A DNA stretch of 64,000 nt from Magallana gigas (lineage: Eukaryota): positions 47,058,001-47,122,000 of the forward strand of contig NC_088853.1 in NCBI RefSeq assembly GCF_963853765.1, in the 5' to 3' direction. Shown piece by piece: positions 33,597 through 61,658 of the stretch. The notes below the pieces were generated by a model that was not told where the DNA came from, made no database searches, and saw only the letters and a program-made list of their open reading frames with translations. Numbering within the stretch: the first letter of the stretch is position 1; each line of letters starts with the position of its first letter. The translations under genes and the position numbers were made by a program.

Positions 33597-34737
33597 CATT
33601 CAGGACAAAGGCGATGATTTCATGAACATAAACTCTCTCTTTATGCATGTTTATATACCTCATTCATCTTTTTCATGTATATGTTTATCAAAAAAGGACT
33701 GTTTTGTCAAAGCAACTAAAATTGAATACTAGTGCGCGTACAATCAACGTACACAAGAACATTTATTATTCCAATTTGATTTTTTGCGACTTCTTTATGG
33801 CATTGATTACCATAAAGATGAGTTGATATTATTTATATTGCTGCGCTATATTTTCCATTATTATAGCTACTGCAATTTCCCTTTTATCTGTCGTTCTATT
33901 CTTCGATTGCAATACATTTTTGGGTTGATTCGTTTTGATATTGAATCCTTGTTCTTGAATTGAATATGCATGAGGACAGGACTGACCCCCTCCCTTTCCA
34001 TCCCCCACCCAAAAGTATCTAGACCCCCGGGACTTTACTCCTTTTTCCGTAAAATTTTCCATTTATGATATATTTCTAATCTAATTAATTTAAGTTATAT
34101 ATTCATTGCACAAAAATACTTAAAACAAACATTTCTCCCCCCACCCCCCCCAAAAAAAAATCAAAGCCCCCTCTTTACATGTATTAGCACTTCTTCAAAG
34201 ACAAAATAAAGTTAATTTATACCATAATGTACACGTATTTTAACCCTAACTTAAGTGAAAATTAATACACTGCGTCGGAAATAGAATGATTAAAGATTGG
34301 CTAAATGATTAATCTGAACGTGAATTGACCGCGTTCTTTAAAACTTATATCGTGTTTAATCTAGAGAAAAGATTAATGGATCAGGGTGTTAGTATGTCGC
34401 TTGATTTCTGGTAAACCAAATAAATGTCCCGAATTGAACTGCTATATATACAGTGTGTTTCTTCATTTCGTGTTGTTTACATAAGAGAGCGTTTAGCGCA
34501 TTGCAACTGCATGAGGATTTGTATAAAGGTTTAATAGATGGGTTGTAAGTAAATTTTAATAGTTTTCATTTCATCACAGTTTATTTTGATTTTATTAAAT
34601 CTTATTTCATAACTTTGATAACATTCTGGTCGCTATTTTTAGGATAAATTGCTTGATTGCAAAATTCATTTGATTTCGGAAGAGAGATTTATGAATAGTA
34701 GTATAGTAATTACTACTGCTATGTGTCAGTGAGTGAA

Positions 34738-36102
34738 ATGGGCAATAGTAAATCCAGCACCACGACCCCGCGGTCTATCCAGATAAAGGTCCACTCCATC
34801 ACCGGAACCTCCACGGGAAACGCATCCAACTCAGAGCAAACTGATGACGTCATTCGGACTAAAGATCCCGACGACGGGTCGCGGCGATCTAAATCACGTG
34901 GTGTTGTGACAACCATACAGGAGGAACAAATCGACAACTTGGTGGATCCTATTGGTGAAAGGTCACAACCTTTGACCTTAGATTCAAAGACCGAGGTCGT
35001 GTGTCGGGATTTTGATTCTCGGAATGAGAGCGTCGCCAGAGAGATCCGTCTGCTCTCGGTAACCCCGAGTTACTCGTTGACTCCGTGTGGAGGTCGCGCT
35101 AGTCAGAAATATCGCAAAAACAGTGACATCATCATGCTCTCAACATCTCCGGAGGAAGATAGACACATACACCATGAAGCGATAACGCCCGAGATCGCCG
35201 AAAGTGAGCACGAGGAACAACTTGAAAACCCATGTACAGTGTTTAACGACGATGCAAACATAGATCACAATGGGAATCCCAGAGAAACTGAAATAACGTC
35301 ACTCTCTGACGTCACTGTTCTTTTCGAGAAACATTGGTCAGCCTCGTCTCCGAGTGACGTCATGCCGTGTTGGATACATGGAATGACGGCGTTGGCCGAT
35401 GGATGCGTTCTAATCCTAGACCTGAATAACAATGCCCTAAAGCTGTTTGACGAAAATCAAACCTTCGTTCACTCGGTGTCTGTGTCTGAGGAATGCATTG
35501 GGATCAGCTCTGTCTATGGCAATGAGGTCGCCATTACGTGCGGGAACGAGATCGTGTTTTATTTTGTTGACAAAACAAGTTTTGTGTTGCAGCAGCGATG
35601 CTTCAAACTCAACGGACGAGGATTTGGTATTTGTTTTTCGCATAAAAACTACGCAGTGACATGCGATATTCACAAGACCAACGGGACCGTTAGAATACTA
35701 AACGAACGTGGAAAACAACGTTATGTCATCAAAAGCTGTAAGGTATTCGGAAATGTACTAAAAATGTCCAAGTTTGTACAAATAGATCCTACTCTAGACG
35801 TTGTTTATATTTCTGATGCTCAAAATGGTCGCATTGTGAGTTTCACGTTTGACGGACGCGCACTGTGGCATTGTGACGTCAGTCAAGAGCCGACATCAAT
35901 AATATCTATTCATGGTTACCTACTTTTAGCCGACTTTCGAGGACACCAAATAATGCAAGTAGGTATCGATGGTCGAGAGTCTCGCGTGCTTCTGACCGAT
36001 GAAAACGAGATTTGGAGTCCAGATTACGTCATATATAACTCCAAGACAAAACAACTGTTTATAAACTCTCCAGAAAATGTTCTCGTGTTCAAATTTCTTT
36101 AA
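34738..36102 (+). CDS. Intronless 454-aa protein: N-terminal MGNSKS, disordered acidic Ser/Thr-rich half, C-terminal NHL-like beta-propeller
   Basis: The track ORF starts at a GTG; the first in-frame ATG is 34738 (GAAATGG context). The C-terminal half has IHGMTALADGCVLILDLNNNALKLFD, GRGFGI, VQIDPTLDVVYISD and PTSIISIHGYLLLADFRGHQI, typical of TRIM-type NHL repeats. No RING or B-box. Confidence 0.88.
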   Translation: MGNSKSSTTTPRSIQIKVHSITGTSTGNASNSEQTDDVIRTKDPDDGSRRSKSRGVVTTIQEEQIDNLVDPIGERSQPLTLDSKTEVVCRDFDSRNESVAREIRLLSVTPSYSLTPCGGRASQKYRKNSDIIMLSTSPEEDRHIHHEAITPEIAESEHEEQLENPCTVFNDDANIDHNGNPRETEITSLSDVTVLFEKHWSASSPSDVMPCWIHGMTALADGCVLILDLNNNALKLFDENQTFVHSVSVSEECIGISSVYGNEVAITCGNEIVFYFVDKTSFVLQQRCFKLNGRGFGICFSHKNYAVTCDIHKTNGTVRILNERGKQRYVIKSCKVFGNVLKMSKFVQIDPTLDVVYISDAQNGRIVSFTFDGRALWHCDVSQEPTSIISIHGYLLLADFRGHQIMQVGIDGRESRVLLTDENEIWSPDYVIYNSKTKQLFINSPENVLVFKFL

Positions 36103-57271: not shown

Positions 57272-58243
57272 TGTTTACAACAGCGATGTAGAGCAAAATC
57301 AATACCGGGTATCAAAAACGCTTTGTAAAAGTCGAACCAATATTGTAAAATCCGTATTATGACGTAGTGCGATACTCGGACTACTTTAACAAAAAAATAA
57401 ACATCGTGTTTATTTTATTAAAGCTATACACGCTATAGTTTACGTCAATTTTGAACGACAGTGAAAAAGCATGTGTTTGTCTACTTATAAAAGTTATCCT
57501 TAATCTGTAAATTACAATGGTGAATTCCATCTCAATACAAAGATATAGATTTTTAATTGTTTATTTTCCTGTCAGGAAAATATACCTTTTCATGAATATT
57601 GATGAAGGAAGAGCGAAACCGACCTCATTGCGCATGTCCGCGGAGAACTAGGTGGTCGTTATTGTTTGCCTAATTAAATATCCAACTTGATTTTTAATAT
57701 GCTGAACAGTTGTTAATTTGAAATACATACATGTATAATGAGTAAAATACGTTTGTCATTCACGATACCCTTACTTCTGCATTAACACTTATAGGATCTA
57801 TAAATAGCACACAGGGAAAAAACACAGGTCTACGTCATTTTTTTAAAGGAAGTATTCATATCTACTCACAGGCTTGTATTTTTTTCTTTTGTTTGTACTC
57901 GTATATCGGACAAATTTATGCTTTACTGAAAATAGCCTTTCCTTTGTGAAACTATCACAATTATGAAGATGTTGACCCTTCACCAGTTTTGGTATGATAG
58001 ACTAAATTTAGCTGTCGATATCACGTGATCGATAGATTGATATTCACGAGGAGGCATTACTTTCCTGGCAGGAAAATAAATATTTTTTATTGTTTAATAT
58101 TTGATATATTTGTTACGTGTTCGAATTTAGCATTATAATTAACAGCATAAAGGTAACTTTTATTAGTAATCAAACACATACATTTTCCCCTTTATTCAAA
58201 ATTGACGCAAATTATAGTGTGTATAGCTTTAACAAAAATTATT

Positions 58244-59443
58244 TTATTTAATACTTTGATTCTCAAGATTAGCTAACACTAGATTTTCTAATGCCGTAGT
58301 TTGTTCGTTAACGTTTCTTTTCCCGAAAAATCCTAATAAAAGAGGGAGAAATTCTAAAAGGCCCACGCCTGCCTCTACAGCTGCTACTCCCGCAACGCCT
58401 GCTTCTATTGCAGTTGCCCCCGCAACACCAGCGCCAATGCCTGCTTCTATTGCAGTTGCCCCCGCAACACCAGCGCCAATGCCTGCTTCTATTGCAGTTG
58501 CCCCCGCAACACCAGCGCCAACACCAGTAGCAATACCAGCAACTATAGGAGCCAGATTTACGTCAACTAAAGGATCGTGCACAAGAGTTGTGGTTAAAGT
58601 GGGCGTTGTGCCTTAAATAAAGAAAAAAAGGTATGAATATAGAAAAAACATAGGTAAAAAAAAATTACCGAGACGAGGCATCACCATCATGAGACCATTA
58701 TAATACAATATGATATATTTGCATAATATGGTATTGTATCATGATGTGACATTGTATCAAGATATTATACTGTACTGTATGATATTTTATCACATGTTTA
58801 TCTCAGCATACAATGGATATCACTCATTGGATAAATTTTCGATATTACACTATGCGTTCTTGTGCCACTTGGACAATTTTTACTAAACTTGGTACAAAGC
58901 AGCCTTATGGAAAGTGATTCAATGTATTAAGGGAGATAATTGCGAAACAGTAAAAATAAATTGTGGCCCCATCCTACATGAGCTTGATATCACTTACAAT
59001 AACTGTTGTTACATTTCTTCCTCCGTACTAAACTTTTATCACAATTATCTGCTAGAGGAGTGTCATGAGGGACTAAGGTGTACTTTCTCACTTGAAGTTT
59101 CCCATCGTTATTGCAAGTTTTTGGGCAAGGTGTCAAATCAAACCAAGGACTATAAACGCATTTCCAATCTAAAATTTGAAACATAAGTTATTAAATTATT
59201 ATTATAATTATAAAAAATATAGATTTTTAATTATTTTCTCTTATAAATTTAAAATTGGAAACATTAAGATGCACACTCTAAATTAAATATTTTTTTTATA
59301 TAAAAATTATTTTGAACTTTTACCTCTTCCACAAAATCCACAATATTCTTCACAATTTTTTTTGGCCCATGATGTGTATGGTGCTTGGCACATTTGTTGT
59401 CCATATTCACGACAATCTGTCCTTTTATTTTGACATTCTCTAC
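58244..59443 (-). CDS. ShK-domain + TSP1-domain protein with a Gly/Ala-rich repeat region and a hydrophobic C-terminal segment followed by GKR
   Basis: Minus exons: 59443-59324 (ECQNKRTDCREYGQQMCQAPYTSWAKKNCEEYCGFCG, ShK), 59168-58998 (DWKCVYSPWFDLTPCPKTC...VRKY...NC...RRKKCNNSYC, TSP1-like) and 58611-58244. All introns are phase 1 GT-AG. Confidence 0.85.
58398..58523 (-). repeat. In-frame 42-bp coding tandem repeat x3 (GAGVAGATAIEAGI-type 14-aa unit)
   Basis: Units at 58398, 58440 and 58482 are near-identical. Confidence 0.95.
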
Positions 59444-60063
59444 CTGGTTAAGACAGATAATCATAACAAGTAATTTTCGACTTATCTCACGTTCTATCAC
59501 TAATCGGCTGTAGGTTTGTGGTAGGAAGTACATGGAGGTATGCAGTGTTTATAAACAATATCAACATATATATATAACGTGTTTATAAACAATTACATCA
59601 AAACATAAAAAAAAAATCAAATCATGTTTAACTCTGGATTGATTTAACAAATATGTTTTACTTCCAAAGTGGGAAGGATAGAAGTCAATTCTGCATTAAG
59701 TCGCGTGTTTCCTTAATGATTTTCAAATTTTTATTCTGTTTGAATTGTTTTGAAAGCATTACTGCCAATTTAATGCATTGCATCAATTTTTTTTATTTAT
59801 ATGAATTATGCTATTGTACGAGAGATAAATGCATATAATAAAATATTATTGATCAATTTATTCTTTGTCATATATTTGTAGATACCTTGAAATTATCACT
59901 ATATGGTATCAACTTTTTTTGTGGCTTAATATGGAAAAGTCCTCTAACTTTATTATATTTAGTGTCTATATTTTATTTATGTTTAGTGAAAAATGTATTA
60001 AAAACACTAATTTCTAACCAAGGAATCAATGATTCATTAATATACTGAGTACATACTAGTATA

Positions 60064-60067
<4 letters not shown>

Positions 60068-60132
<65 letters not shown>
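60068..60132. repeat. (TA)n microsatellite
   Basis: Visible run; another lies at 61584-61655. Confidence 0.98.
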
Positions 60133-60134
<2 letters not shown>

Positions 60135-61299
60135 TGTGCACATCAAGTATATGAGAACAACCTTAAGGCAGACATCAAATTCAGGCAGACAAAAAAGTGT
60201 CTGCCTGATTTTTAAAACAATAATTAACGTTGCGATTAGTATTGATAAATTTGCTTACCATTCTTTTGCAATAACTAAACACAATTAATTCATGGAAATA
60301 CTTTTTGTGTTTATTGTTAATTAAAGGTCATAATGAAACATATTATTTAACATGTTGAATGTATGTTTTTTACAAATACGAAGCATACCCTTTAGGTGGA
60401 CAATGCTTAACTTGATAAAAACCATACTTTTTAAGAGAATGTTTCATGTTTTAAAACTTTTTTCATCATTTACGATTATGTTTTATCAAATCCCATGCTT
60501 TTTCCGAAAAAAAAAATTATGATAAAAAATTGAAAATTTGCCGCCGTGCCAAGTCTTCATTTGAAAAATATTTTTTGATGGTTTGCGATGGGTTGCAAAG
60601 GCTTCCGAAAAAACATGGCTGCTTTGAGTGCGTAAGTAGGATCAAGCTTATATAGACTAGCTTATTAAGTTTTCATCCTGTTTTCTTGATATTTTACTTT
60701 TATTCATTAAAATTCTTATGTTGTTACACTAAGTTCATGAAATATGACGACAAAAACATGTTGAATTTGCAGTTGTCTCAAAAAATAACAGTAACTGTAA
60801 TGTTTCATAAACTTTTCCTTTTTAAAAACTAAAAGGTTTTTAATCATTTCATAATATATATCAAAGGAATTTATACCTGTATATTCAATTTAAGAAAGAA
60901 TCGAAAAATATTTTTTCCTTCAAAATGACTAGTATACTTCCTTACAAATTTTTAGTTTTCTTCTTAGTCTTTTTAGGTAAATGATGCACCCACCGTTGGT
61001 TGGTTGGGTAGCTGAGGGGCTTTTACAGGCGTTGGATCATAAAAACTTAACAGGAGTTTATTAACCAGAATTATTTCGTCAATGAAAGGGAAATTGGTTT
61101 TTTTTTAATAAAAAAAAATCGTACATGAAAATGAAGAGGCGGATCAAGCGGAGGGGTCAGAGTAGGTGGTGGACTTTCCTATCTGAGATGCCTAATAAGC
61201 CAATATATATATAATAATTGTAGAGGGTATATAGGCCCCTATTTTTTATCATGAGAAATATATATAACGCAGGTGACTGGGTTTCAAATCTACACGTAC

Positions 61300-61399
61300 A
61301 TGTAGTTATTGAACTTAAAAAACTCATGATCAAAATCATAAAGATCAATTGAAGTGCAATTCTCGTCCAAGGGTCTAAATAACTCCCAGTAAATCTCAT
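61300..61399 (-). CDS. Candidate first (signal-peptide) exon of the ShK-TSP1 gene
   Basis: AAAAATG-MRFTGSYLDPWTRIALQLIFMILIMSFLSSITT followed by a phase-1 donor T|GTACGT, compatible with the acceptor at 59443. Confidence 0.35.
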
Positions 61400-61581
61400 T
61401 TTTACTAAACGTGTCCTATTAAAATAATTCGCCAGGAGTAAAGTTTAAAGTTTATTCAGTGACAATCACAGTTGAATATCCACAGTAAAATAATACAGTT
61501 ATTATAAATTCAAAATGAAGTAAACATAAACGATCCTCTTTTACACACAAAAACTGACTGATACACTCAATAAAATCGTTC

Positions 61582-61658
<77 letters not shown>

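Follow-up and report, generated by a model that had tools for sequence, protein, structure and literature searches.

An oyster ShK-TSP1 protein with a conserved C-terminal tail that resembles a marginal membrane anchor more than an antimicrobial peptide of the frog type

Results

Exon structure of the gene

We analyzed 64,000 nucleotides of the Magallana gigas genome (contig NC_088853.1, positions 47,058,001 to 47,122,000; hereafter, the window), an AT-rich stretch (34% G+C) carrying on its minus strand the 3' part of a gene for a protein with ShK and thrombospondin type 1 (TSP1) domains. The protein ends in a low-complexity region, a hydrophobic segment containing FLPLL, the tripeptide Gly-Lys-Arg (GKR), and a short tail. 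We defined three exons by translating the strand in three frames and reading the splice junctions directly; every junction is bounded by AG and GT and lies in phase 1 (Table 1).

The ShK exon (acceptor ...aaccag/GT, donor G/gtaaaa, the slash marking the exon border) encodes six cysteines in ShK spacing, a pattern that a regular expression matched only once in the whole window, and it scored 27.4 bits against Pfam PF01549 (ShK; gathering score, 20.9). Similarly, the TSP1 exon (acceptor ttttag/AT, donor T/gtaagt) scored 24.8 bits against PF00090 (TSP_1; gathering score, 21.6), while the TSP1_spondin profile reached 30.5 bits, under its cutoff of 41. The codon of the final cysteine of the TSP1 domain is split by the intron (T/GC) and completed by the last exon, which is preceded by a polypyrimidine tract and the acceptor tatttaag/GC. 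This last exon carries LLEFLPLLLGFF, followed by GKR and the tail, and ends in a TAA codon (58246-58244) overlapped by an AATAAA signal. The tandem repeat within it encodes 14-residue Gly/Ala/Val/Ile units with one Glu per unit. Further ShK or TSP1 exons, as expected of paralogs, were not found in the window, which holds one of each only.

A preliminary description of this DNA had proposed the succession of ShK domain, TSP1 domain, Thr-rich linker, repeats, hydrophobic motif, GKR, and tail, and the exons, the Pfam matches, and the RefSeq ortholog described below all agree with it. The lengths were revised: the tail after Lys-Arg counts 23 residues rather than 22, and instead of a protein of about 252 residues, the window codes for 219 residues, corresponding to residues 57 to 279 of a 279-residue protein.

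Table 1. Features of the predicted ShK-TSP1 gene, in window coordinates
Feature	Coordinates	Strand	Description
ShK exon	59443..59324 (120 nucleotides)	-	Both borders in phase 1; encodes the second of the two ShK domains present at full length
TSP1 exon	59168..58998 (171 nucleotides)	-	Thrombospondin type 1 repeat; phase 1 to phase 1
Last coding exon	58611..58244, stop included	-	Thr-rich linker, Gly/Ala/Val/Ile/Glu repeats, hydrophobic motif, GKR, 23-residue tail
42-nucleotide tandem repeat	58393..58521	-	3.1 copies, 98% identity (Tandem Repeats Finder)
Candidate marginal transmembrane segment AGVGLLEFLPLLLGFF	58325..58372	-	Conserved Glu and Pro; from hydropathy scales and conservation
Gly-Lys-Arg (GGG AAA AGA)	58316..58324	-	Read directly; putative stop-transfer/positive-inside signal or convertase and amidation site
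Acidic tail of 23 residues after Lys-Arg	58247..58315	-	Net charge -2; conserved T-x-A-[LF]-E-[ND]-L-V core
Signal exon proposed earlier (ATG at 61399)	61300..61399	-	Unsupported as part of the gene

Some structural features were observed immediately downstream of the gene. An inverted repeat with 144-nucleotide arms (57413-57556 and 58094-58237; 77% complementary, 537 nucleotides apart) begins 7 nucleotides downstream of the stop codon and encloses a 30-nucleotide direct repeat (57561-57590 and 58057-58086). This inverted repeat may be a foldback element, or one resembling a miniature inverted-repeat transposable element, in the 3' untranslated region or flank.

Orthologs in two sister species

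A search restricted to the tail recovered the uncharacterized protein LOC128173192 isoform X4 of Crassostrea (Magallana) angulata (XP_052694879.1, 279 residues; P0005). Compared with the window by tblastn, it shows the same three exons with coincident boundaries: the ShK exon is 100% identical to its residues 58 to 96, the TSP1 exon is 97% identical to residues 97 to 154, and the last exon matches residues 163 to 279 at 82% identity, a value lowered by repeat differences. The linker, the repeat type, LEFLPLLLGFFGKR, and the tail are alike in the two sequences, whereas the repeat units differ slightly and one tail residue is different. The N terminus of P0005 (residues 1 to 57) is hydrophobic and signal-like and then enters a first ShK domain. 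In Pfam, the protein shows two stretches matched by ShK (32.8 bits), and TSP_1 scores 19.4 bits over the whole protein, just under the cutoff of 21.6.

We also used the last exon as a HMMER query against 1.84 billion representative proteins, which returned four matches, P0001 to P0004. P0001 is a genomic fragment from run SRR27362817, with DNA 83 to 86% identical to the window, introns included. P0003/L003 is a genomic contig from an independent run and is 98% identical to the window; it diverges and stops within the repeat array (L003:873-934), where the assembly probably broke at the repeat. P0002, a Ser/Glu/Thr/Gly/Val repeat protein, was discarded as spurious. The 90% cluster of P0004 contains the uncharacterized protein LOC111115518 of C. 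virginica (XP_022309989.1, 281 residues; P0006), and the last exon matches P0001 and P0004/P0006 as well. In P0006, a putative signal peptide, two ShK domains, and TSP1 are followed by a Pro/Thr linker, repeats rich in Ala and Glu, IEMFLPLLAFFGKR, and a tail of 23 residues; like P0005, the protein has a hydrophobic N terminus. A C. virginica-type genomic fragment (L002) has the same TSP1 exon (TSP_1, 32.5 bits) with a phase-1 intron splitting the last cysteine codon (T/GT).

By these comparisons, the gene is real and had already been predicted as an uncharacterized protein in two sister species, and the three exons in the window are the final coding ones of the ortholog or an allele of C. angulata LOC128173192. 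The predicted product is a small Crassostrea protein of the secretory pathway with, at full length, two ShK domains and one TSP1 domain.

Searches for the tail beyond these sequences gave little. In a word-indexed database, the tail query found only P0005 and P0001 at lengths of 102 to 488 residues, and none of 600 pattern matches in JGI metagenomes was confirmed. No Pfam family matched the tail (Keratin_2_head at E = 2.1 is noise), the profile search of the PDB gave only low-complexity matches to ribosomal protein eS8 (E = 0.03 to 0.13), and the PDB sequence search gave only the F-spondin thrombospondin repeat 1vex at a nonsignificant E = 0.84. We found nothing in the literature on LOC128173192, LOC111115518, or XP_022309989. 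As a predicted module, the tail has so far been seen only in Crassostrea. Of the isoforms of LOC128173192, X4 alone carries it among database proteins of 153 to 488 residues; isoforms X1 to X3 may be longer or have a different end, which hints at alternative 3' ends of that gene.

The 5' end of the gene

Residues 1 to 57 of P0005, comprising the putative signal peptide and the first ShK domain, had no match in 59448-64000. Because of this, the predicted 5' exons either are located past coordinate 64000, at a distance of over 4.5 kb upstream, or are absent from the window. The preliminary description had instead proposed a signal exon starting with the ATG at 61399. This exon has no counterpart in either ortholog, being unlike the N termini of P0005 and P0006; it has no Pfam match and would put an unpaired cysteine at the junction, and we rejected it. 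Two long (TA)n microsatellites (60068-60130 and 61585-61656) lie upstream of the ShK exon. The supposed signal open reading frame sits between them, and the minus-strand open reading frames there are repeat derived.

A short C-terminal motif is the best-conserved part of the protein

We then compared the C. angulata and C. virginica proteins, which share 48% identity overall, region by region. Identity was 29% in the signal peptide, 60% and 66% in the first and second ShK domains, 45% in TSP1, 24% in the linker, and 42% in the repeats, a figure that reflects low complexity. From the Glu through the Arg of GKR, it reached 71%, so that no other part of the protein, the folded domains included, is as well conserved as E-x-FLPLL-x-FFGKR. 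In both lineages, the Glu stands exactly 10 residues ahead of the Gly of GKR. The short motif is under clear constraint, and since it is better conserved than the folded domains, some specific function is presumably attached to it.

Lack of conservation of Gly-Lys-Arg among homologs had been put forward as one of the findings that would refute the earlier proposal of a processing site. The proposal survives this test: the tripeptide is invariant in the four relatives found (P0001, P0004, P0005, and P0006) and in the window, and it is thus kept even in the C. virginica ortholog at 48% overall identity. The tail behind it is conserved as well (8 of 23 residues identical between P0005 and P0006, or 35%, and 11 of 23 similar); the tails share the T-x-A-[LF]-E-[ND]-L-V core and have a net charge of -1 to -3 across members. 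The conservation of GKR does not separate a convertase and amidation site from a helix-ending Gly followed by a Lys-Arg stop-transfer signal.

The region ahead of the motif follows another pattern. The stretch from TSP1 to GKR is similar in length in P0005, P0006, and the window (99, 100, and 95 residues) and longer in P0001, and in the gigas/angulata type it contains 7 acidic and 0 basic residues. The repeat period and composition are not conserved: 14-residue Gly/Ala units in gigas/angulata are found versus Ala/Glu units of about 8 residues in C. virginica, whose tail region is Ala rich and scarce in Gly (7 Gly in 100 residues). The window has three near-identical units, P0005 has three different ones, and P0001/L001 has about six. 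At 58355-58372, the window lacks 4 residues (12 nucleotides) just upstream of LEFLPLL that are present in P0005 and L001, and the stretch between the flanking Glu residues is shortened from 11 to 7. Between the window and L001, Nei-Gojobori counts gave 3 synonymous and 0 nonsynonymous changes in the last repeat unit, a very small number, and 5 nonsynonymous and 1 synonymous change in the motif and tail, too few to interpret.

The resemblance to temporins is superficial

The segment had been described as temporin-like. The FLPLL start is indeed shared with temporins 1TSb-d, which begin with these residues (table in PMC10049141), and in both cases the segment is followed by Gly and basic residue(s). 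This is a five-residue coincidence, however, and the other features of the family are absent. Temporins are peptides of 8 to 17 residues, usually with a net positive charge, made from a tripartite precursor of the preprodermaseptin type (conserved signal, acidic propiece, and C-terminal peptide) with Lys-Arg immediately before the mature peptide and a Gly-Lys end (PMC10049141). In contrast, the oyster segment is preceded by L-E or E-M instead of Lys-Arg, and the protein, which comes from a bivalve, has neither an acidic propiece nor a frog-type signal and no match to a Pfam precursor family. Furthermore, the oyster segment has a conserved Glu and no positive charge, lacks an N-terminal peptide boundary, and its GKR is followed by 23 conserved residues. 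Because every testable defining feature of temporins is absent from the predicted oyster protein, we consider the likeness superficial. Judged by its sequence, the tail has more in common with a marginal membrane anchor than with an antimicrobial peptide such as those of frogs.

The C-terminal segment as a candidate membrane anchor

The interpretation that we prefer, and to which we give about an even chance, is that of a type I single-pass membrane protein in which Lys-Arg would be the stop-transfer signal. Outside the cell, the mucin-like Thr/Pro-rich linker would form a flexible stalk that displays the ShK-ShK-TSP1 head, with the variable, acidic, Gly/Ala-rich low-complexity region as a spacer between this linker and the hydrophobic segment. 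The FLPLL segment (E-x-FLPLL-x-FF) would cross the membrane, with Lys-Arg as the stop-transfer/positive-inside signal, and the 23-residue amphipathic tail would face the cytosol, where it may function in sorting or in binding a partner. The Glu and Pro conserved within the span may serve a specific intramembrane contact rather than plain anchoring.

Ectodomains, a Thr/Pro stalk, a hydrophobic segment, Lys-Arg, about 23 hydrophilic residues, and a stop codon are the usual layout of a type I protein, and in the oyster protein, Lys-Arg directly follows the segment and precedes 23 hydrophilic or amphipathic residues. Hydropathy was computed on three scales. Kyte-Doolittle means over 19 residues were 1.6 to 1.8 for the FLPLL segment across members (window, 1.76 to 1.78; threshold, 1.6), compared with 1.96 for the P0005 signal peptide. 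With Glu counted as charged, the segment gave -1.7 to -4.7 kcal/mol (window, -1.7) on the Wimley-White octanol scale. Apart from the signal peptide, no other segment is favored on both scales in all members; the Gly/Ala repeats are unfavorable on the octanol scale. The preliminary description had dismissed an anchor on account of the Glu and Pro. We consider an anchor at least as likely as processing, since Kyte-Doolittle and octanol windows pick out this segment as the sole hydrophobic one besides the signal peptide. Finally, conservation of the residues after Lys-Arg from C. virginica to C. angulata is predicted by a functional cytosolic tail and is not needed by a discarded propeptide.

Several observations weigh against this interpretation. 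On the additive translocon scale, the best 19-residue stretches cost +3.4 to +5.2 kcal/mol (window, +5.2), while the signal peptide of P0005 costs only +1.3 on the same measure, and by this standard the segment is poor as a single-span anchor. Across members, the candidate segment is 17 to 21 residues long, with one Glu and one Pro; in the window, the uninterrupted stretch from the flanking Glu to the Lys has just 17 residues, owing to the 4-residue gap relative to P0005 and P0001. A plain anchor needs neither 71% identity nor an invariant Gly before Lys-Arg, and a net acidic tail (-1 to -3) weakens the positive-inside argument. An AlphaFold2 model of P0005, built on an alignment of 6 rows, was unusable (predicted local distance difference test score [pLDDT], 33); it places a helix in the tail at a pLDDT of <50, with helices flanking a break at FGKRNVN, to which we give no weight. 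Because the hydropathy scales disagree, the segment is only a marginal transmembrane candidate.

Two other modes of membrane attachment were rejected. A glycosylphosphatidylinositol anchor does not fit the hydrophilic C terminus, and a two-span hairpin including the first Gly/Ala stretch does not fit the lack of hydrophobicity of that stretch in C. virginica or its unfavorable octanol values.

Possible cleavage and amidation at Gly-Lys-Arg

A different fate of the C terminus, which we regard as possible but rather unlikely, is that the protein is secreted and cut after Lys-Arg by a convertase-type enzyme, trimmed by a carboxypeptidase, and amidated at the Gly. The products would be an approximately 25-kDa ShK-ShK-TSP1 protein ending in ...LLLGFF-amide and a free acidic 23-mer. 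The invariance of Gly-Lys-Arg in all relatives, even in the Ala-rich C. virginica form with its scarce Gly, is in agreement with such processing, as are the poor translocon values of the segment and the presence of Glu and Pro in it.

A precedent for the layout of product, GKR, and a C-terminal peptide of about 22 residues exists in the tachyplesin precursors of horseshoe crabs, where a C-terminal peptide of 22 residues comes after the Gly-Lys-Arg amidation signal (PMC7011531), and the oyster tail is likewise short and acidic. The two differ in what stands before the signal: tachyplesin is a small, cationic, disulfide-bonded peptide lying directly after the signal peptide of a 77-residue precursor, whereas in the oyster a multidomain protein of about 230 residues with an anionic low-complexity region precedes GKR.

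Other features speak against processing. With no basic cleavage site upstream of the hydrophobic segment, a small peptide could not be released, and it is the entire protein that would be amidated, which to our knowledge is rare. The P4 residue is Phe, so there is no furin consensus, and cells expressing the gene would need neuroendocrine-type convertases as well as an amidating enzyme. Membrane-active peptides are cationic, but this region is anionic and lacks basic residues. Pfam gave no signature of a precursor family, and the conservation of the peptide after Lys-Arg, discussed above, is a further point against a discarded propiece. An extension of this scheme, in which the cut recognition-type protein would dock into membranes through an amidated C terminus ending in Phe-Phe while the conserved acidic 23-mer is released, is in our view unlikely.

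A less likely extracellular matrix protein or nonfunctional copy

Less probable still is an uncleaved, secreted extracellular or matrix protein in which the Gly/Ala-rich acidic repeats would self-associate in a silk- or elastomer-like manner and the conserved C-terminal motif, together with the amphipathic helix, would be an assembly or interaction module. Such a protein would account for a repeat region whose period and composition vary while its overall length and acidity are kept, as is typical of composition-driven regions, and whose copy number ranges from 3 to about 6. The last repeat unit, with only synonymous changes between the window and L001 (3 versus 0, very small counts), points the same way. 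However, the invariant GKR and the E...P...FF motif are left unexplained, and the protein shows no likeness to a known matrix protein family in Pfam or the PDB.

That the window holds a truncated or nonfunctional duplicate without its 5' exons, in which the tail would have no function, is highly improbable: the lack of exons for the signal peptide and first ShK domain in the 4.5 kb of the window upstream of the gene and the lack of tail-bearing proteins other than P0005 and P0001 at 153 to 488 residues would fit it, but none of the three exons has an interrupted reading frame, their splice sites are intact, a poly(A) signal is present, the domains are 97 to 100% identical to those of the C. 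angulata protein, the 98%-identical contig L003 comes from an independent run, and oyster genes ordinarily can have a 5' intron exceeding 4.5 kb.

Discussion

The ShK and TSP1 module families are greatly expanded in bivalves, and their members are mostly uncharacterized. In the gene described here, the head consists of ordinary modules, and the tail is an orphan module attached to them. Whichever interpretation of the tail is correct, what is gained is a corrected gene model, with an additional ShK domain and the putative signal peptide outside the window.

ShKT domains joined to thrombospondin-type repeats have already been described, and single-domain ShK peptides are narrowly distributed (PMC6409789). 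The oyster protein resembles multidomain mollusk ShKT and TSP1-repeat proteins in having ShK and TSP1 modules on symmetrical phase-1 exons, but none of the described proteins has its C-terminal module, and we found no characterized function for the ShK-TSP1 combination in oysters in the literature. The channel-blocking ShK toxins are short single-domain peptides, a class from which the oyster ShK domains, placed in a multidomain protein of 279 to 281 residues, are set apart.

If the tail is a membrane anchor, the gene would encode a lineage-specific surface protein of an ordinary kind, although its transmembrane segment would be unusually polar. If, on the other hand, Gly-Lys-Arg is a processing site, an entire protein would be amidated at its C terminus, which would be unusual. 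Docking of the amidated end into membranes, if true, would represent a new way to link a folded head outside the cell with a C terminus that seeks lipid conditionally, so far restricted to Crassostrea.

Other features of the window

Away from the ShK-TSP1 gene, the window contains two runs of N (6672-6871, 200 bases, and 15379-15550, 172 bases). Its longest open reading frame (34723-36102, plus strand) is uninterrupted over 459 residues and has no Pfam match at E <= 0.01. A tRNA-Thr gene with the anticodon GGT lies at 42472-42546 on the plus strand, where the Rfam tRNA model scores 47.2 bits and ARAGORN agrees.

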